In this document: positions 52,801 to 64,000 of the stretch, piece by piece | Position numbering within the stretch: the first letter of the stretch is position 1 | Layout: each line of letters starts with the position of its first letter | From: Ramazzottius varieornatus | Taxonomy: Eukaryota; Animalia; Tardigrada | Length of the DNA: 64,000 bases | Direction of reading: 5' to 3' | NCBI GenBank assembly: GCA_001949185.1 | Contig: BDGG01000004.1 | Coordinates: 397,620 to 461,619 of the forward strand | The notes under the pieces: generated by a model | What the model was told of the DNA's origin: nothing | Seen by the model: the letters and a program-made list of their open reading frames with translations, nothing else | Databases searched by the model: none | Translations under genes and position numbers: made by a program

Positions 52801-55800
52801 CATTTCGGCAAAGAAGAACCAGCTGGACATTGCCAACAGTTTGATCAAGTACAAAGCGGACCCCAATGCCGAGTCGAAGGCTGGATTTACGCCGGTGCAT
52901 TTAGCTTCCCAGGAAGGCCATACCGAGATGCTTTACATGCTGGTGAAGAATGGCGGCGACGTTAACGCTCGAGCTAAGGTACTTCCAGGCTCATCTCCTC
53001 ACGAAATATGGTAGTGCTTCCTTTGGTTCTTCAGCAATTAAAAATTCGTTCTGTGTTTTAGAATGGCTTAGCACCTCTTCATTTAGCGGCTCAAGAAGAC
53101 CATGTACCCATTGGCGAAATTTTGGTCCAGAACAAAGCTGAACTGAATCCCGAAACTAAGGTCTTTACGAACGAAGAAGAACAATTTGGCATTTTTCTAG
53201 GCTAGTTTTGTCCTAACATCTGTAATGGTTTGCAGGCTGGATATACGCCATTGCACGTTGCCAGTCACTTCGGCCAGCTGAACATGGTGCGCTTTTTGCT
53301 GGATCAAGGCGCCGACGTCAACTTGAAGACCTCGGTGAGTAAACTGTAGCCACTCAAGGAACCTTTGCCATTTAGTCTCCTTCACGACATGGCACTTTAT
53401 GCAATTACATAACCAATACATAATGCCCAGTCAGCGGCTACGTGGGCATAGTCTGTTCAAGCGCTTAACAATCATGCTTTGCTTTCCCATTGAAAGTGAT
53501 CTAAATTCCACGGTGCCGATTTCAGTCAAAAGTCCCATGTGAAATTTTATACGGAAAGAAATAGCTGTTCTACGTTTCTCTATGTGGAGTTTTGAATGTC
53601 GCCTTGTTCTTGCAGTACGGATACACGCCTTTGCATCAAGCAGCCCAACAAGGCCAGACACAGGTTGTCAACGTCCTGTTGCAACATCAAGCTCAACCCA
53701 ACGAAGTCAGCAACGTAAGTATTCCCTCCACGAAAAGTTTCCTCAGTTTTCAGCGACAAAACGCGCTGTTAAATGTCTTCATCATACATCGATTTTCAAG
53801 TTTATAACACCGATATGTGCGTGCCAGAATTTGTAAAAATTTTGGTACGTATGTATTACGCTGGTCAATCACGATGTGGTCTCACATGTTCCGACGTTTC
53901 GACCGTTCATTGGCGAACTTCTCTCTAATAATTGTGTCCGTGATTGCAGCAAGGGCAGACTGCCTTGTCGATCGCTGAAAAGCTCGGTTACGTGTCGGTC
54001 GTGGAGACCCTCAAAGTCGTCACCGAGACTATTGTCACTACCACAACGACCACCGTCACCGAAGAGAAGCTCAAAGTCCAGCAGCCCGAGTCGATGCAGG
54101 AGGCCTTCATCAGCGACAGTGAAGACGAAGCTGGTGAGTGCTGCAGTAAAACCCTAGGTCTAGGCTTTAGCTTTTTTCCGTCGTAGTAAAAGTATTACGT
54201 CTCAAGTAAAGTACGTACAGTACGGTTCGGTGGTTTTTCAAGTATCATCCTTGTTACGGTGGTGGGATGCTTTTAATTTTCCGTCCAGTAACTTTCTTTG
54301 CTTCGCGAAATGCTCTCGGTGGTGGGACGGTGCTGACTCTGTGCTACTTCAAACAGCTACGGATGACGACTCTGACTTTTCGGAGCCTGAAGAATTAATC
54401 TGGTGACCGGGTCTACCTTCTCCTCTTCTTCTTCTACCCTACTCTTTCTACTGCACAGTTGCTCAAGTGGGTGACGGGGCTTCTTTTTCCGCGTGAATGT
54501 TTCCCCTGCACGAATCACCACACCTTTGCATGACTCTGTCTCCCCTCATGTAGACAAACGCATGGATGACGAGGAAGACGAAGGTCTGGCTCGCTATAGT
54601 CCCGATACCGATCATATTGTCTACTCCCCCACACCGCCCGAGCGCCACCAAGTAATGATCGAAGAACGCGTGGTCCACCAAGAGCTCCCAGGTATACCCA
54701 CCCGTGCACGTAACCCGAAAGTTACCACCACTACCATCACCACCCTCATCGCCACACCGTCCATCCGTAAGGACCGCTCGAAGAGCCCAGACTACCACGC
54801 TGAACTTTCGTACGAAGACTCGGCCGGTATTCCCCTGCAAGGCGCCTACGATGACGATCAAAAGGAACGCGAACATTACACCGAACATGTTACACAGGAG
54901 CATATCGAGCCCACAGAGTACGAACACACCATTCATACACGCAATGCTCCTCGCGGTGGACGGTCAACCGAAGACATGGTCCCGTACGATGGTACCGATG
55001 AACAGATCCAGTACCAGCATTCCATCGTGAAGAACACTATACCGAAGTCGCCCGTCCATGTGACTTCAGACTACAAGCAGTACGAGACTACCACCAAGGA
55101 AGTCACAAATATCGAGTCGCGAGGGTACGCTCCGCGTCATGTCCCTGATGTGGTAGTGCTGACTGAACGTACCGAGTCCCGCTCAGGCATGACCTCGCCC
55201 ATGCAGGTTCGCACCGGGGAGTACAGTGAGGCTCAACGGGTGCCGGCGAAGTCCGCGCAGGATAACGAGAATTTCATCCGGTTCGAGCTGGTAGCGCCAC
55301 CAACACCGCCTTCGCGGAAACGTGAGGAGAGTCCGCTGACGAATGGTACCAAGAAGAAGCGTAGGTGGTTCTCGTTTGGTAGTCGTGACAAGAGTCGGCC
55401 TGCGGCTGAGAACGAAGCCAAGACTAGTACAAAGAGCAAGGATAAGTCCTCGAAGAAGCGCAGTAAGTCATCGGTGGCCGAGTCCGCTGCGACCGCTTCC
55501 AAAGTCACCAAGCGATTCGACTCTCCGCAGATCGAAACGTTGCACGAAGATCAGACCGAGTCATCCGCAGTGAAAACTTCAAAGGAAAAATCGAGCAAGT
55601 CGAAGGATAAGTCCAAATTCAAAGAAAAAGTCGCCGTGGTCGATCAGCAGTTTGTGAACGAACGAGCGTTGAGGTCACCCAACACGATTGAGTCTATTGA
55701 TGAAAAGTCCCGAAGGGAAGTTCTTCCGGACGACGCTGAGCTAACTATGGAACGGCTGGAACAGCGTGAGCGGGCATACAAGGAGAGTCTGGAACGTGCG

Positions 55801-58800
55801 CCAAATCAGACAGTGGAGCGTCTGGGCGAGGCCATCCACCAACTCAGTCCCGAGTCAGCCAAATTAGCCCGTCGTACCACACCAAAAGACGCTACCAACG
55901 AGGCCATTCACGCGACTTACAGCCAGTTTAAATCACCCAAAGACCGTCTGGTCGAACAGCTGTCACAGGGTACCGCGCGAGTCGTGGTCGATGATGACGA
56001 CAGGGTAGAAACAGCTTATTCACATAGTCCGAGTATCAGGCACATCAACGGACCACGGGAAGGTACTGTGGAACAGTTGAACGAGTACACTCAACAAAAC
56101 GTCCAGCCTGACAGCCCAACGAAGAAAGACCGGGGTATGGCCATGTTCGCCCACAGACGAAAAGCCAGCGAAGTCGATAGCGATGACGAGAACGACGCCC
56201 TTGAACAGAACACCCAAAAAACCAAAGTCAAAACACCGAAGGAGAAGATCGTCGAGATGTTGAGTGAGGGTCGCCATGAATTCCAGGTAGCTGAGCATGA
56301 GGATGACAGTGATCGAAAGTACAAGAACAAGCCACTGAACGTCAAGCGCGCGGCTTCACCTGGGGATGACGAAGTGGAAGTCTTGGACGAAAGTGTAGTC
56401 GACACCGAACTGGCTGATGGTACACAACGTAGTCCGAAGACTGAACGTCAGTCACGTGGCCGTACTTCCCCACTAGTCGAGCGCGCAATTCACGATCGGG
56501 AGAATGTCCACTTGGAGGAAAACGTTCTGGTGCAGAATATCCCCGATAGCCCGCAAACTGAAAAACGAGGGAAGAACCTGAGCGTTACGATTACCCCAAC
56601 AGCCACGAAGAAATCCAGTATGAAGGGAAGCTCCCCAAGGACCGGAGCGACAGAACACATCGATGAGTCGGTTCGATCGACAAGCGTGGAGGATGAAGGA
56701 AGTGCTCAGAAGTCCCCGAGAAAACTTCAGTTCGCTCGCCGGTCGGTGTCTCAACAAGGTGAGACGGACACTGAAAGTGAGACGGACGACGATGAGGTTA
56801 ATCTCGACGAGAGTGTTCGCAAGGACAGGATCAAGAGGAAGCCTCACGTAAAAAGACAGAAGAAGGTCTCGAAGGAAGGATACGAGGCAGTCCCGACAGA
56901 CGAGTATTTGAACGAGCGAGTATCCCATAAAGAACTTCAACGGGAAATGTCTCTCGAAAAAGTCAAGCCCAAGAAGGACAAGGATAAAAGCACGAAAGAG
57001 AAGGTAGTGACAACTCGCCCGTTGAACTTGGATGACGAAGTGGGCCATGAAAGGGAGAACTTGGACGAGGCTGTGGTCATTGCGACAAGTCAGAACTTGA
57101 AGAACGGTGTACCGCTGACCGATGAGTACTATCAGCAGGAGTCGTACAGAGTCAAAGGTTCGCCTGGAAAGACCCGTAAAACTTCTCCTGGTCGACAGGA
57201 AAGAATCGAAACAGAGGTGATCACTACGATCGAGCCAGTTGAAAAAACAAAGTTAAAAGTCAAGCCCGAAAAGCCACCTAAGCCAGAAAAATTAAAGAAG
57301 GCGAAGACTCCCGAAGTCCCAATCCAGGAAGTCTTCGTGAGAATCGTGGACGTCACTGGTGCGCTGGAAGAACCCGAGACTGAAGAACAGCGACTGACCA
57401 AGAAGAAACTAGAAAAGGAAAGAGCCAAGCAGGAAAAGAAGTTTGCGGAAGAACGAGATAAAGCTGAGAAGGCCGCTGCGAAGGAACGGGAGAAGGCGGA
57501 GAAGGAAGCGCAGAAAGCAGCTAGGAAGGGTGCGACCGAGAAGAAATCGAAGGAGAAGGAGGACCGACTCGAACGTATCTCCGAGATCTCGGAGAAACAA
57601 GCCAGGTTGACACCTGATGACATCGAAATGATCGATGAGAATGTATCATTGCGCGAGCTGACTCCCACACCCGAACTCAAGACTAAAGTTCAGAAGGTGT
57701 TTCGAGAGAAGACGCCCACGAGGATTTCCATCGCGGAAGAAACTGAACGAAGCCGGATACTTGACTCCGGACTGGGTGACTCGCCTGTCGCGAGGAGTCC
57801 TTCGCAGCCGTTTTCGCCTGTTATCAAGTCACCGCGCGTGGAATCGGAGCGAACACAGAGAGCGGAAGCTGTTTCGCCCACGATGGAACAGCTAAAGGTT
57901 GGTGGGCATCGTAGCCGGTCAAAGTCACCGGGTGGCGACAAGACCGTGGTGGATTTGAACGAGAAGGTGGCAAAGACAAAGTCGCCGACAAGGAGTGACG
58001 CCGAGGGCGAAGGTGATGGGAGGACCCACGTGGAGCTGTATGAAACTCCGTGGGTACCGCTGAACAGGGAAGAAGACCGCGACGACGAAGGTCATATTGC
58101 TTCGTCGAACAGGAGGACGAGTAAGTATTATGAAACATGAAGTCCAACATTAAGTCAATAGGTTTGCACGAATGGGCTGGCTGATAAATAAATGAACGAA
58201 GTGACCGCATGGGCAAGACCTCACTCTGCATCGGCATGAAGAAAACGTGAGATGAGAATGCTGAGTTTTACCGCAGTATGTGGGCAAGCAGTCATCCCAC
58301 CACCGAACATCGAGAAATTAGATGGTTTCAGCGAATTAGAACAAATTTGTCATTATTTAACCACGCGTGTTTTAGGGCATGGTGAACTAATTTATCTATT
58401 TTAGATGAAGTGCCCGCCACATCGCCACCAGAACACACGTTCAACTACATGCAAGAGGCGACTCGAACGTACCCTGACCATCATGCTGAGCGTACCATGG
58501 AAGGTCAGGCACTGTACGCTTCCGGCTACTCGGAAGGTAAAATGAGTCCGCAAGTCGAGGCGAAGACCAGCCCGGTCCGAGTCTTGGCGCCACCCATAGC
58601 GGTACCACCTACTCGTGCCGAAAACGTAAACCAGGAAAACGTCCGCACCGAAAAGCGTCCCAAGGAGAATGGCTATCAGGAAACCCTATACGAAGACAGC
58701 GTAACGCACGCGACTCAGCAGCCGAGGAAACCGTCGACGTCTTGGAACCAGAAAGAAAGCTTCGAGCAAATGTAGGTTTGATTGATGAATCACGAGTCAA

Positions 58801-61800
58801 GAATTAGAGATAGTACTCCTGTAAATTAAGTTAATTGATACAGACCTGTAGAGAAATAACTATTGTCCGGAAGTTCAACGTTACCAACACAGTTTCCAGT
58901 TTCCTAGCACTTTGCCCGATGATAACATCATTGGCGAGATGTAGCCGCTAATGTTGCTCTGGATTAACCTTTTTCTGGTCCACTTCTGAAAATATTTCCT
59001 TATTGTTTAGCATACGGGAGGCCGAAGCGCGAAGGACAGATCAGCCCAACTACCATGCTGCGATTGTTGGTCACGAGCCGGAAACGGTTCGCGACGACTT
59101 GCACGAGCTGGAAGGTACCTTCGCTCCGGACAATGTCGATCTCCGAATGAACGCACCAATTCGTGGCGGGTAAGTGAATCTGAATTTCGGTTTTGACTGC
59201 AAGCTCGATGCATGGCGCCTTTTTATACCTTACTGGCTGCCACATAGCTTGCACTAAAACATCAACACCTGCTTGGGCGAAGCATTTCATGAGTTGAGGC
59301 TTTTACTTTCCCATATTTTCTCCTTGTAATTTCCTTGCTCAGTATGGCACTAACCCCAAATTAGCTTCCTGGTTCGCACGTACCGGTACTTTGGCCCTTT
59401 TTCCTAGCTCCTCGTTTGTCCACTCTCTAATGTGATCGTTGTGTGATCATTTATCCTTGTCAACTCTTGAAGTCTCAATGTCGTACTGACGCTGTGTTTT
59501 TCTCCGGTTTGTGCAGGAAACTCAGATGGAAAACGTAAGTACTCTGTGCACTTTAACGTACACTACAGTAAGTTGCTTCATCCAGCTATCCGCTACTCTC
59601 TTGGTTCCCTGTGTTCGTTGGGCTCTGGTACCGAAATTTCTAGTCGTGTTCACCGTGCTGGTACGTGTGGCCCTGACTTAACAAAAAATCTATAATGTCT
59701 GACATCCGAAAGCCCCTTTTTTCTAAGCTTTCAGATAACAATTCGGAGGTCGGCAAACGAGACGTACAAGATCTCTATCTAAGTGGCGCATACTTCCGTT
59801 GCCATTGGCTGGAAATGTGGGCCACTTCAGTATCAGTCCAGTGCGTTCTGTTTTTCTGCCCTCTAATTACCCCCAATTACCAATTTACCGTCTCCCTAAA
59901 ATTATCCAGATACTTTCAAACTAATTTCCAATAATTTAACCTAAAGTTTTGCCGGGTGAAACTTAACCATGAATTATCAGGTGGCGTCTTTCATTCTCAC
60001 ATTGACAGCACGGCATTGCTGCATCGCACACAAAACACCGCCGCGCTCAAGTGCACCGCGTGTTGTGATTAATTTGCCATCCTACCAGCGTATATTTCTT
60101 ATTTCATTTTTCCAAACGTCGTTCCAAGACAGTAGTGTTGATTGACTGCCTTTCTCTCTCCTTTCATGCGTGTGACAACAGTACCTTTTTGCGAGGCAGT
60201 TTTCTGGTGAGCTTCCTGGTGGATGCCCGTGGTGGCGCCATGCGCGGCTGCCGTCACTCTGGCATCCGTGTCATCATCCCACCTCGCAAGGCTCCTTGCC
60301 CCATGCGCATCACCTGCAAGTATTTGACCAAAGACAAGGTGGCCATACCGCCACCGCTGATGGAAGGAGAAGGTCTGGCTTGCCGCATTTTGGAAATGGG
60401 GCCGCTTGGAGCCAAATTCCTCGGGTAAGTACAGACCCATCGCCATGAGTTTTCGTAGGAAAAATTTCCAGTTCTTCAGTTCTCCCTTGTGAATCTCTGA
60501 TCGCCATCTGTCTGCCGTATTGATAGTTACGCTAGTGGCGCAGTGAAGAAAACTATATTGAATAATTCTTTTTCTCAGACCGGTCATCATCGAAATTCCC
60601 CACTTCGCCTCCCTGCGAGAAAACGAACGCGAGGTCCAGATCCTGCGCAGTGAGAACGGCCAGACTTGGAGGGAACACACACTGGAAGCTACGGAAGATG
60701 CCGTGCAGAAGGTTCTCAACGAAAGTTTCGACCCCGATGGTAAGACGATATTTTTTGGGATTGCATCTATCGAGCACACGGCGAAATTAGTCGAAGGCGG
60801 AAGAATGCAACGTTCGTCTTCTTCTTCAGAGCTGAGTGCCATTGAAGATCTGCAAACCAACCGCATCATCCGCATTCTCACCACCGACTTCCCTCTCTAC
60901 TTCGCCATTGTCTCGCGTATTCGCCAGGAAGTCCACGCCGTTGGACCTGACGGTGGCATCATCACATCGACTGTCCAGCCACAAGTACAGGCTCTCTTCC
61001 CCGAAGGGGCTCTGACCAAGAAGATCAAGGTCGGAGTACAAGCGCACGTCATCCCACCTGACGTCGTTGCTCGCCTCTTGGCTTCCAACCGCATCGCCGT
61101 CAGCCCCATTGTCACCGTCGAACCTCGTCGCCGCAAGTTCCACAAGCCCATAACGCTGACTATCCCTCTCCCTCGAGCAGCTGGCAAGGGCATGGTCAAC
61201 CAGTACACCAGCGACTCGCCCAATCTGCGACTCCTGTGCAGCATAACAGGTATGAACTATCGTAGAAAAACGGCTGATTATGCGTGCGTTATTCAGTTTG
61301 CCATAAAAGTCCGATGTGGAGATTGGAGAAAATCGAAATATTGTGAAAGTGTGATCTGATGAAATTGTTTCATGGGCCATGCTTTTTTTACAGGTGGTAC
61401 CACGCCAGCCCAGTGGGAGGATATTACGGGTTCGACGCCCTTGGTGATCGTGAACGACTGTATCCAGTTCACCACGACGGTCTCCGCCCGTTTCTGGCTG
61501 ATGGACTGTGGGCACAACATCTCGGAAGCTGTTCGATTCGGACATGCTGTATACTCCGATGCTTGTGTTGTACCGTACATGGCCAAGTTTGTCGTGTACG
61601 CTCGACGCTTCGATAACGAGGAAGCGCGACTCCGTGTCTTTTGTATGACTGACGACAAAGAAGACAAGACACTGGAACATCAAGAACGCTTTGTTGAGGT
61701 AAGAATTAGCTGACGCAAAAGGGCGAAATGCCGCCGAGATACTGGCGAACTTGTTATCGCTTACCGAACTTACCAGTCAATAGCAAACAGGTTCAAGGCA

Positions 61801-64000
61801 TCCACATTTCTTGTTTTAGGTGTCCAAGAGCCGCGACGTGGAAGTGTTGGAAGGCAAGAACCTATACATCGAAATGGCCGGAAACCTGATCCCGGTTACC
61901 AAGTCCGGCGACCAGATCCACTTCCCCTTTTACCCCTTCCAAGAGAACCGACTACCCTTCTTGGTCAAAGTCAAGGATCCCAATGACGATGCTCAAGGTA
62001 GACTGGCTTTCATGCGTGAAGCCAAGTCTGGACGAAACGACTTGCCTCAAACACCCATCTGCAACCTGAGCGTTCGTCTCCCCGACGAACTTAGCGTAAG
62101 CACAACACCTCATCCACTCCTTGTTCACGTATGACAGATCGTAATAAATCACCACGAAAGTGGTCAACCCATTCGTGAGTGGAGTAACGTTACGTTGACT
62201 GAACTTCGACGCAGCGTAGTTGAAACGTTGTCTTTCTACAGCCAATGGAACCAACTCAAGCGAAGGACCTGGTGACCATCGTCCGACGTCCCGTCTACAT
62301 GCGTGAGATCGGCAAGGCCGGATCAGTCCATAAGGCTGACGTCCGGTTACACGACGTGGCCGATATGGTTGGATCTGACTGGCCCGCCTTGGCTCAGCAA
62401 CTAGGCTTCCGCGATCCAGAGATCCAGTCTCTGATGGACGAAGAGCCCAAGACCAACATTCAGGCCTTCAACATGCTGCGCCGCTGGATCGCTCGTCGCG
62501 ACGTGACCAAGTCGGCCGGCAATGAACTGGAGCAAGCATTGAAACGCATTGGTCGAGACGACATCGTCAACAAAGTCATGTTTAACGTCAAGCTCCTGAC
62601 GGACGATCTGGACCGAACCATGGCTCGATTGAGTGTCGACCGGGACCAGGTGGGCTTCGATGCCTTGCACGAAGAGATCGGTCCGGGAACCAGCGCGGTG
62701 GAAGGAGGCACTGAAACCTTTGTTCGAGACTACGTCAGAGGGTAATGACTCGCTTTTACTTCCCCATTCCTCACTTTTTCCATGTATTCTAGAAGATAAG
62801 TGTATCATATTATACTTCTCCAGATACCGGGAACCAGTCAGAGCAGAATCGGAACCGACCAGTGAGACCACTTCGCTCCATGAACATGTTATGGAAGAAG
62901 GTATGTTGAATATTCAGCGGTGTTCCTTCGCTACTGTCCTCCTACAGGATTTGAAGTAGTACCGATAATGCGAAAATATCTGTGTAGAAGTGGGAGCGAA
63001 TCGAAGTGGAGAACCAGCTACCAAAGAGGTGCTCCATGAGCGTGTCACTCAGCAGAGACCTCCTAGCCCACCTCAACGCCAGATTTCCCAACGAGAAAGG
63101 GAGGAAGCTACGAGCCGGCTTTCTTCTACCATGCGATCTATGGACACGCCGGTACTCATGCGGGATGTCGAGAACACACGCGAAAGTGAGCGTCTGTACG
63201 AAACTGTCTGTAAGTATAACACAGTGCGGGCAGAGTACAGTGGCCGAATTGCTGTAGAGAAATGTCAACAACACTTCACACCATTGCGTTCCCCATGACA
63301 TGAAACGCACTTGATGAACGGCATCGACTTGCTTAAAATACATGAACTTCGTCTAACTTTTTTCCAGCTCAACGGGAAGTTGTGGAACCACGCGCAGTGG
63401 AAGTCCGCACGCTGACCGGACAAGTGTCGCCAACAGCCGAGGTGGTGGTCAGTCGTGAAGATGTTCGTCGTACTTCGCCCGCAGAACCTACCCCACCTTC
63501 GCCTCGAACCAAGCCTGTCCCACCTCCCCGTCACGATCAACCCCATGTTCAGTACGCTGAACACGTCTCGACGTTCGAGTTGCCCAAGGAGACTCCCACC
63601 TACGTTCGTGAGGCCGGAGTGGACGAGTCAACGCCCACAGTCAGCGAGGCCCGTCGCCTGTCCGGCCCTGCTCCTGCCGACGACAACGCCCAAAAGTCCA
63701 TCTCGCAGAAACAGTTCGAGACTGTCGAAACCGAACACGACGAAGACGGCAACTTGGTCACTAAGAAGACTATCACTACGGTCAAGACCACCCGCTCCAC
63801 ACGAACCATCACTGGTGGTAAGTAACGTCCCTTCGTTTCACACCATACTGTAGTACCGATGAATGACTACTGACTTACTTTACAGACCAAGACGAGCTGA
63901 TCAAGCAAGCCACCGAAGGTGAGCTCCGCAATATCCCGCAAAGCGTCCTTGGTGACGTCCAACAGCAAAGCCGAGTTGATATTTCTGGGCCGGAAATCAC
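49829..64000 (+). CDS. Ank2: Ankyrin (ANK repeats, ZU5-ZU5-UPA, death domain, C-terminal tail), multi-exon, 3' partial
   Basis: [24 protein letters not shown]; KGNTSLHI; [13 protein letters not shown]; [15 protein letters not shown] and further ANK repeats to 54133 ([15 protein letters not shown]). ZU5 [21 protein letters not shown] (from 60200); [19 protein letters not shown]; [23 protein letters not shown]; death domain [18 protein letters not shown] (~62350). The symbol denotes the invertebrate Ank2/unc-44 type. Confidence 0.96.
54554..58120 (+). CDS. Giant (3,567-nt) symmetric phase-1 exon of ankyrin between the ANK repeats and ZU5
   Basis: Lies within the 1215-aa ORF. Acceptor ctctgtctcccctcatgTAG|AC and donor ACGA|GTAAGT. 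Both ends are phase 1, matching the upstream donor at 54133 and the downstream acceptor at 58405. Confidence 0.8.
59517..59534 (+). CDS. 18-nt microexon of ankyrin (inserts KLRWKT before [12 protein letters not shown])
   Basis: Branch point TACTGAC, a pyrimidine tract, then TGCAG|GAAACTCAGATGGAAAAC|GTAAGT. Phase 2-2 matches the flanking exons (59011-59168 and from 60200). Confidence 0.8.

Follow-up and report, generated by a model that had tools for sequence, protein, structure and literature searches.

Can an ankyrin gene carry a giant exon in the linker between its ANK repeats and its ZU5-ZU5-UPA module, and if so, is that exon used, where does it come from, and what could it do there? Known long ankyrin exons all follow UPA; those of chordates precede the death domain, whereas those of protostomes and echinoderms come after it (PMC5135030). 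The question is raised by a 64,000-nt stretch of the Ramazzottius varieornatus genome (hereafter, the window), in which a first-pass annotation placed a giant ankyrin exon upstream of ZU5 and proposed that it can be either included or skipped. Our analysis bears out part of that reading: the exon, its splicing, and its position hold, whereas its use as a cassette looks unlikely, and it is not the only giant part of the gene.

Host gene and position of the giant exon

The gene is on the forward strand and has the domain order of a canonical ankyrin, with 24 ANK repeats followed by ZU5-ZU5-UPA and a death domain. Repeats 1 to 23 are encoded by exons between 49790 and 53804, placed by Pfam Ank/Ank_2 matches, a profile scan, and RNA contigs; the count of 24 is partly by eye, with 21 repeats from the profile scan, R1 and R6 added by eye, and R24 placed by alignment to AnkB structures; the Pfam Ank/Ank_2 matches are to open reading frame (ORF) pieces. 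On the other side of the linker, exons at 60182 to 62742 match the Pfam families ZU5, UPA_2, and Death (PF00791 twice, PF17809, and PF00531, in that order, at 60.1-62.7 kb). Searches and folding were done exon by exon, and one ankyrin locus with ZU5-ZU5-UPA and a death domain was found in the R. varieornatus genome.

The exon at 53950 to 54133 contains repeat 24 and, directly after it, the AI-c fold-back peptide, ending in ...ISDSEDEAG. This peptide aligns with AnkB in the structures 5y4f and 4rlv (E 4e-16 to 6e-16) over the pattern ..KVVTE..TTTTT..PE[ST]M.E...SD.E, and is near-identical in three invertebrate ankyrin transcripts (P0056, P0072, and P0075), where it also ends in SDSEDE[GA]G. Upstream of 53950, the RNA contigs continue for another 2.2-2.3 kb, and their loose end reads the preceding exon, confirming the 53950 acceptor. 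The giant exon begins one residue past ..SDSEDEAG, which is aligned with the acidic end of AI-c.

The giant linker exon itself (54554 to 58120) is 3,567 nt long and holds 1,189 codons without a stop, with AG/GT borders and phase 1 at both ends; in the frame starting at 54556, 1,188 full codons are open, with a split codon at each end, and the remaining two frames are rich in stops. The open stretch around it (54475 to 58137; 1,221 codons) is the longest in the window, the runner-up having 415 codons. Its acceptor reads ctcccctcatgtag/ACA at 54554 and its donor CGA/gtaagt after 58120; the preceding exon ends in CTG/gtgagt at 54133, and the following exon starts at 58405 with ttattttag/ATG. The two flanking introns, 54134 to 54553 (420 nt) and 58121 to 58404 (284 nt), are both of the GT..AG type and in phase 1. 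The exon is present as a single copy in the genome, matches no Pfam family in a search of the exon, and has neither a tandem DNA repeat (Tandem Repeats Finder) nor an internal repeat detectable by self-BLASTP. Long antisense ORFs overlap it.

Inclusion of the exon in transcripts

The transcript data consist of assembled Logan contigs from four runs of four different studies (X1, X3, X7, and X11). That these runs are RNA is a guess as to their type, for which the spliced joints argue. Their contig sets amount to 13-27 Mb, against a genome of 55.8 Mb; given these sizes, and because the exon occurs just once in the genome, a retrocopy is excluded. In X3, X7, and X11, each contig runs from 53950 or 53967 to 54132, continues from 54553 to 58120, and then from 58405 to 58600, with no extra letters and no joint inside the giant exon. 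Both joints, 54132 to 54553 and 58120 to 58405, are spanned by single contigs of 7-9.5 kb. The junctions expected from the sequence (54133-54554 and 58120-58405) are thus found in three studies, with the second intron spliced out in all three runs. The fourth run, X1, has the joint 54132 to 54553 and, in addition, one low-depth contig that retains intron 54134 to 54553, so that removal of this intron, and with it use of the CTG/gtgagt donor at 54133, is seen in all four runs. Together with the Pfam domains on both sides and the retained AI-c, these spliced contigs corroborate the earlier calls of an ankyrin exon of more than 3 kb between ANK repeats and ZU5 and of an open exon at 54554 to 58120 with good splice sites and matching phases.

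Both flanking introns interrupt their codons after the first base, and hence joining 54133 directly to 58405 would preserve the frame (G+AT, giving Asp). The permissive half of the include-or-skip proposal therefore stands, but the joint from 54133 to 58405 is absent from the contigs of all four runs. An alternative that gives skipping a larger role is a regulated cassette exon, left out in most cells, where a short-linker ankyrin would result, and included in some types, for example neurons, as for other giant ankyrin exons. It would fit the matching phases and the small alternative exons that vertebrate ANK2 and ANK3 have at the same spot (PMC3663501). Contigs moreover lose rare variants and are without information on levels or tissue, leaving room for a rare or cell-specific skip. 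Against this alternative, apart from the missing joint, stand the unbroken contigs across both junctions in three runs and the depths in X1, where the branch at 23.2 divides into 17.1 for the spliced path and 4.9 for the intron-retaining one, leaving ~5% for any other path. Furthermore, 14 runs from five studies contain 0.81-0.90 of the words sampled from a 4,701-nt query, which corresponds to the exonic share of that query with the giant exon included and so argues against skipping. We therefore consider a regulated cassette unlikely. Inclusion of the giant exon looks dominant in whole-animal RNA, and we hold with good confidence that it is a real coding exon belonging to the sole canonical ankyrin gene, apparently present in its major transcripts, directly after AI-c.

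Relatives and origin of the exon

The giant exon has almost no recognizable relatives. A phmmer search of 1.84 billion representatives gave one match, P0001, from one other genome (phmmer E 6e-7; BLASTP E 4e-20; 36% identity). The similarity is restricted to the last ~260 residues of the exon, defining a conserved C-terminal module (residues 916-1174; 57301 to 58077, forward strand) with the elements EVxxRIxDxTG, a K/E helix, DSGLxx.., KTVVDLxEKV, and LYETPW[VL]PLNREED, and conservation in the P0001 genome reaches the same exon end. Searches for homologous proteins with the giant exon and with P0001 returned P0001 itself alone, a search of the ESM Atlas gave no usable match to the giant exon, and LYETPWxPLNREED was found in metagenomes neither by an alignment-derived nor by a degenerate-pattern scan. 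Among the homologs of the ZU5 exon, there is no ZU5 fragment from the 100,258-bp contig of P0001.

After the death domain, just past the window, the gene continues with nine long ORFs of 225-664 amino acids (675-1,992 nt), defined at the DNA level, which is the usual arrangement in protostomes (PMC5135030). Because these tail ORFs belong to the same gene, the linker exon represents an extra module rather than the gene's sole giant part. The idea of an independently evolved giant ankyrin has to be changed accordingly.

The tail also offers a possible source. The giant exon could have been relocated or duplicated from the region after the death domain by exon shuffling, a process that has been proposed for the shift of the giant-exon position in chordates (PMC5135030), and the same gene does hold nine long disordered ORFs there. 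BLASTP of the giant exon against the nine tail ORFs, however, gave no match below E 1.8, its K/R content is 18% compared with 5-11% in the tail ORFs, and E-x-[LIV]-[DNS]-E occurs nine times in it but at most once in each of them. Giant-exon sequence evolves fast, such that this dissimilarity is not decisive (PMC5135030), yet we regard relocation as improbable. Most likely, the giant exon is a lineage-specific expansion in tardigrades and not a copy of the tail exons or of another gene.

That the open frame is not ankyrin coding sequence but a nested gene, a transposon ORF, an open retained intron, or an assembly artifact is extremely improbable: the missing Pfam family, the near-absence of homologs, and the overlapping antisense ORFs would agree with such an origin, but RNA contigs of three studies splice both ends to ankyrin exons, the sequence is single copy and without repeats, an open frame of 1,189 codons would arise by chance at this base composition with a probability of ~2e-27, GC by codon position is 58/42/59% as opposed to 45% in the introns, and the conservation of the C-terminal part in the P0001 genome stops where the exon does. 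The transposon and nested-gene versions are contradicted by the single copy, the lack of a Pfam family, and the splicing to ankyrin at both ends.

A giant exon at the ANK-ZU5 linker position is not known from any described ankyrin; the giant-ankyrin survey of Jegla et al. 2016 searched downstream of UPA alone, in a sample to which tardigrades did not belong (PMC5135030). In the terms of that survey, the tardigrade sequence is an exon of more than 3 kb contained in transcripts, but its location is not downstream of UPA. [quoted passage not shown] It differs from these in being located upstream of ZU5 and in coexisting with long post-death-domain ORFs in one gene. Also, whereas the known giant exons mark a minority neuronal isoform, the tardigrade exon appears in the dominant whole-animal transcript.

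Structure of the extended linker and its possible consequences

Between the ANK repeats and ZU5-ZU5-UPA, the tardigrade protein has ~1,365-1,370 residues of a disordered type. This linker is normally short, as the earlier reading had assumed, with 138 residues in AnkB (PMC5779224) and 100-119 in P0056, P0072, and P0075. In vertebrates, the linker between the membrane-binding and spectrin-binding domains (MBD-SBD linker) contains AI-c and a divergent B-linker/AI-b exon, with small alternative exons just 5' (PMC3663501, PMC5779224). The site of the giant exon, directly after the retained AI-c, is the same, at a known hot spot for divergence and alternative exons, and the sequence there is similarly disordered; it is, however, approximately ten times longer, with 1,189 residues in one exon against 138 in the entire AnkB linker, and has no detectable similarity to AI-b.

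Three further exons complete the linker, all on the forward strand. The first (58405 to 58771; 122 codons) has its start from RNA and a probable end at AAT/gtaggt set by that site and the frame; it matches no Pfam family, no canonical linker, and no PDB entry at E up to 10. The second (59011 to 59169), with probable boundaries at ttgtttag/CAT and CGG/gtaagt, contains ..PDNVDL.. and resembles the C-terminal half of the P0056 and P0072 linkers by local alignment (z 4.2-4.5, above 200 of 200 shuffles), the shared segment being ..[AP]DNVDL... The third is a putative 18-nt microexon (59517 to 59534; KLRWK, phase 2-2; sites tgtgcag/GAA and AAC/gtaagt), with KLRWR at the matching place in P0056 but not in P0072 or P0075, so that the KLRW[KR] microexon directly preceding ZU5 looks optional. 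In contrast, the N-terminal half of the three invertebrate linkers (..SYKYLTxDxMxSLxDDS..) is unmatched here, with 1,311 residues in its place; the giant exon compared with canonical invertebrate linkers gave z values of 0.5-3.2, inside the shuffle range. No AI-b-like sequence was found in comparisons of the giant exon with invertebrate linkers and of exon 58405-58771 with the PDB.

In composition, the giant exon agrees with the earlier description of a charged, S/T-P-rich, and probably disordered sequence. It has 19% D/E and 18% K/R (37% charged), 23% S/T/P, and no Cys, and contains 39 S/T-P sites as compared with 12.9 +/- 3.1 in shuffles. A single-sequence AF2 model has pLDDT values below 50 at 89% of its residues. 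The motif [LI][DN]ExV is repeated and enriched, although the pattern was set post hoc, which overstates the enrichment. The sole segment modeled at pLDDT 74-81 spans residues 943-1016 (57382 to 57603, forward strand), a predicted helix with 59% E/K/R, 8% hydrophobic residues, and 18 opposite-charge i/i+4 pairs that is partly conserved in P0001. It is a candidate ER/K single alpha-helix, with a coiled coil or disorder as further readings. ER/K single alpha-helix spacers occur in myosin VI/X and caldesmon, and the tardigrade segment would be comparable in charge and, in this single-sequence prediction, in forming one unbroken helix of 74 residues.

The giant exon, together with the exon that follows it, would replace the N-terminal half of the ~100-140-residue linker and could thereby take the place of its AI-b-type autoinhibitory part. 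From its composition, it may serve both as a multivalent docking platform and as a tether that is long, flexible, and tunable by phosphorylation; such a tether would be expected to loosen the mechanical and steric coupling of membrane cargo binding to spectrin binding. A change in module spacing and autoinhibition through the linker exon is plausible on this basis, the mechanism being built on vertebrate AnkB and AnkG work (PMC3663501, PMC5779224) and on composition.

Tentatively, and with some doubt, we propose that a giant disordered exon has arisen de novo at a third site in ankyrins, the MBD-SBD linker, and is carried by every or nearly every ankyrin molecule of this tardigrade, so that ~1,370 flexible residues, with an ER/K spacer helix and a multivalent array of [LI][DN]ExV docking motifs, join the two modules. 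If this is true, then tight MBD-SBD coupling would be dispensable, and the parsimony case for deriving all giant ankyrin exons from one ancestral insertion would be weaker. The argument for a single bilaterian origin is that de novo appearance of a very long ORF in ankyrin is too improbable to have happened twice (PMC5135030); an ORF of more than 3 kb without a detectable donor, at a new site, and in a gene that keeps the usual tail ORFs bears on this argument. In models of autoinhibition, short connections from the ZU5-ZU5-UPA-death-domain (ZZUD) tandem to the linker let spectrin binding pull the inhibitory segments off the ANK groove (PMC5779224), an idea for which a natural ankyrin with ~1,300 extra linker residues is a ready-made test. 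With its symmetric phases, its single copy, and the lone ankyrin gene of the organism, the exon also lends itself to a clean in-frame deletion.

Two readings of short motifs in the giant exon were dropped. Copies of the repeated motif are too inconsistent for a SUMO-interaction site, and ..ETPWVPL.., measured against the published xLIR pattern, does not form a canonical xLIR; its bare W-x-x-L core alone fits.

Reading frame and splicing of the giant exon

The ankyrin gene of Ramazzottius varieornatus contains a giant exon, apparently included by default, at a third position, the ANK-ZU5 linker, whereas known giant ankyrin exons lie downstream of UPA. The evidence that this exon (54554-58120, + strand, 3,567 nt) is genuine is strong. 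The frame from 54556 (+) is open throughout, with 1,188 whole codons and a split codon at each end, and the other two frames contain many stops; at this base composition, 1,189 consecutive sense codons would arise by chance with a probability of ~2e-27. The exon lies within an open stretch (54475-58137) three times the length of any other in the window, and GC by codon position within the exon is 58/42/59%, compared with 45% in the two flanking introns. Its borders are good splice sites, with an acceptor at 54554 (ctcccctcatgtag/ACA) and a donor after 58120 (CGA/gtaagt), facing the upstream donor at 54133 (CTG/gtgagt) and the next acceptor at 58405 (ttattttag/ATG). Because both introns split a codon after its first base, the exon is in phase 1 at both ends, and the first-pass annotation of a stop-free, phase 1 exon with good splice sites is borne out. 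On the minus strand (56476-57252), open frames reaching 259 codons overlap the exon and are probably a by-product of its GAR/AAR-rich sense codons.

When public runs were searched with words sampled from 53900-58600, 14 of the runs, belonging to five studies, contained 0.81-0.90 of these words, which is the exonic fraction of this interval with the giant exon included. Assembled contigs of four runs from four studies (X1, X3, X7, and X11) were aligned to the stretch. In each of X3, X7, and X11, a single contig of 7.1-9.5 kb consists of 53950 (or 53967)-54132, 54553-58120, and 58405-58600, with zero mismatches, zero internal joints, and GT..AG at both removed parts, so that the junctions 54133-54554 and 58120-58405 are both spliced. 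These contigs reach 3.1-3.4 kb further downstream and, in X3 and X7, 2.2-2.3 kb further upstream, long enough for the ANK repeats and ZU5-UPA-death. The RNA status of the runs is a guess; nevertheless, three observations favour RNA over a retrocopy as the origin of the joints: introns are removed, the contig totals are small (13-27 Mb vs. 55.8 Mb of genome), and the giant exon is single copy in the genome.

In X1, a contig of only 59 nt, at depth 17.1, carries the first joint, and a 479-nt contig retains intron 54134-54553 at depth 4.9, about a quarter of that of the spliced joint. The upstream contig stops exactly at 54133 (depth 23.2), a depth that the spliced and intron-retaining paths nearly exhaust. 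The retained intron, which has in-frame stops, reflects either pre-mRNA that has yet to be spliced or true retention. The exon had been proposed to be either included or skipped: inclusion is shown by the spliced contigs and looks dominant. No 54133 to 58405 joint was seen among the contigs of the four runs, which cannot reveal rare forms, and a skipped transcript may exist. Direct RNA support covers both giant-exon junctions as well as the acceptor at 53950; the remaining linker exon boundaries are predicted from consensus sites and frame.

Position in the ankyrin gene

ORF pieces upstream of the giant exon encode ANK repeats, whereas those downstream encode, in order, ZU5, ZU5, UPA, and Death. 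A profile scan identified 21 repeats, which with R1, a degenerate R6, and R24 make a total of 24. Because the ZU5 exon matches only this locus in the whole genome (55,842,812 bases in 200 contigs, with 4,740,345 bases in the window's contig), the animal apparently has no other canonical ankyrin. Exon 53950-54133, which terminates in ..ISDSEDEAG, aligns to the AnkB structures 5y4f and 4rlv over repeat 24 and the entire AI-c, the conserved fold-back peptide that follows it. Hence, the giant exon begins right after AI-c and, as first proposed, lies between the ANK repeats and ZU5.

The following exon (58405-58771, +, 122 codons; start by RNA, end inferred) has no detected relative or family. Its ..TFNYMQE.. 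faintly resembles the M-x-Y core of AI-b, the autoinhibitory segment of AnkB, a likeness that the statistics did not bear out. Counting the predicted exons, the linker comprises 3,567 + 367 + 159 (+18) nt, or about 1,365-1,370 residues, compared with 138 (828-965) in vertebrate AnkB (PMC5779224). In vertebrates, AI-c is followed by a small, highly divergent exon bearing AI-b (PMC5779224; PMC3663501), and small alternative exons are known directly 5' of it (PMC3663501).

Three invertebrate ankyrin transcript fragments from the ZU5 search (P0056, P0072, and P0075) have an AI-c almost identical to that of this gene, but only 100-119 residues separate SDSEDEGG from FLVSF, where the giant exon stands here. 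The predicted exon 59011-59169 matches their C-terminal half (..LEEKLKELEK..ADNVDLPKN..) with z 4.2-4.5, higher than any shuffle; the same alignments against shuffles found no counterpart of the giant exon or of 58405-58771. A predicted 18-nt exon encoding KLRWK directly before ZU5 (59517-59534, +, phase 2-2, good AG/GTAAGT) looks like a conserved alternative microexon, since P0056 has KLRWR at this spot, P0075 has nothing, and P0072 has a different insert.

Encoded sequence and its relatives

The giant exon contains no Pfam family, tandem DNA repeat, or internal protein repeat. Its composition (19% D/E, 18% K/R, 23% S/T/P, no Cys, and two Trp), its 39 S/T-P dipeptides (12.9 +/- 3.1 in shuffles), and single-sequence AlphaFold2 (mean pLDDT 37, with 89% of residues below 50) agree with the earlier description of a charged, S/T-P-rich, probably disordered sequence. 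A recurrent short motif is counted 9 times in the form E-x-[LIV]-[DNS]-E (0.5 expected) and 7 times in the stricter form [LI][DN]ExV (0.08 expected; maximum 3 in 5,000 shuffles), an enrichment that is overstated because the pattern was drawn up after the sequence was seen. The sole confident element is a predicted 74-residue helix (residues 943-1016, pLDDT 74-81), whose composition (59% E/K/R and 8% hydrophobic residues) is typical of ER/K single alpha-helices. Two basic clusters, ..TKKKRRW.. (55340-55370, exon residues ~264-271) and a second dense one (56820-56865, residues ~755-771), look like nuclear-localisation-type or membrane/tubulin-binding patches.

Among 1.84 billion representative proteins, HMMER returned a single match, P0001, a 414-residue ORF on a 100-kb ENA contig; no relative of the first 900 residues was detected. 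Exon residues 916-1174 align to P0001 118-340 with 36% identity (BLASTP, E 4e-20), with identical islands of which LYETPW.PLNREED is the last. Beyond it, P0001 continues into unrelated, intron-like sequence. Hence, at least one further genome conserves the end of the giant exon, as far as roughly the same boundary. An indirect synteny test, seeking a ZU5 fragment from P0001's contig among ZU5-exon homologues, found none, and two metagenome scans for the conserved C-terminal module gave no match.

Tail ORFs and proposed working

The 27 kb beyond the window holds, after the death domain, nine disordered-looking ORFs on the + strand, each 225-664 codons long (window-equivalent 65092-80887; contig 462711-478506). 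Judged by sequence, these tail ORFs occupy the usual protostome giant-ankyrin position, here split by introns into several exons. Hence, giant-ankyrin status would not be due to the linker exon alone, which is an additional module. With 5-11% K/R, the tail ORFs are acidic, and each has at most one copy of the E-x-[LIV]-[DNS]-E motif, which argues that the linker exon was not copied from them, and no similarity between the two was found. The suggestion of an independently evolved giant ankyrin therefore needs qualifying: the linker exon is unlike the tail and, alone among the gene's ORFs, passes the 3-kb threshold of PMC5135030, but conventional tail ORFs are also present. The published giant-ankyrin survey looked solely downstream of UPA and included no tardigrade (PMC5135030), and our full-text search found no literature on tardigrade ankyrins or large linker exons.

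Evidence for the function proposed here is thin. Because AI-c is retained, its fold-back onto repeats 18-24, the first autoinhibitory contact, is likely intact, and more than 1,300 disordered residues would stand in for an AI-b-type segment. In current models, spectrin binding releases ankyrin autoinhibition via coupling (PMC5779224), a coupling that the giant exon could loosen. With a chain of this length, the ANK solenoid could move tens of nanometres away from spectrin-bound ZU5-ZU5-UPA, with the predicted helix as a stiff spacer ~11 nm long. The chain could also provide numerous sites for proline-directed phosphorylation and a multivalent array of short motifs.
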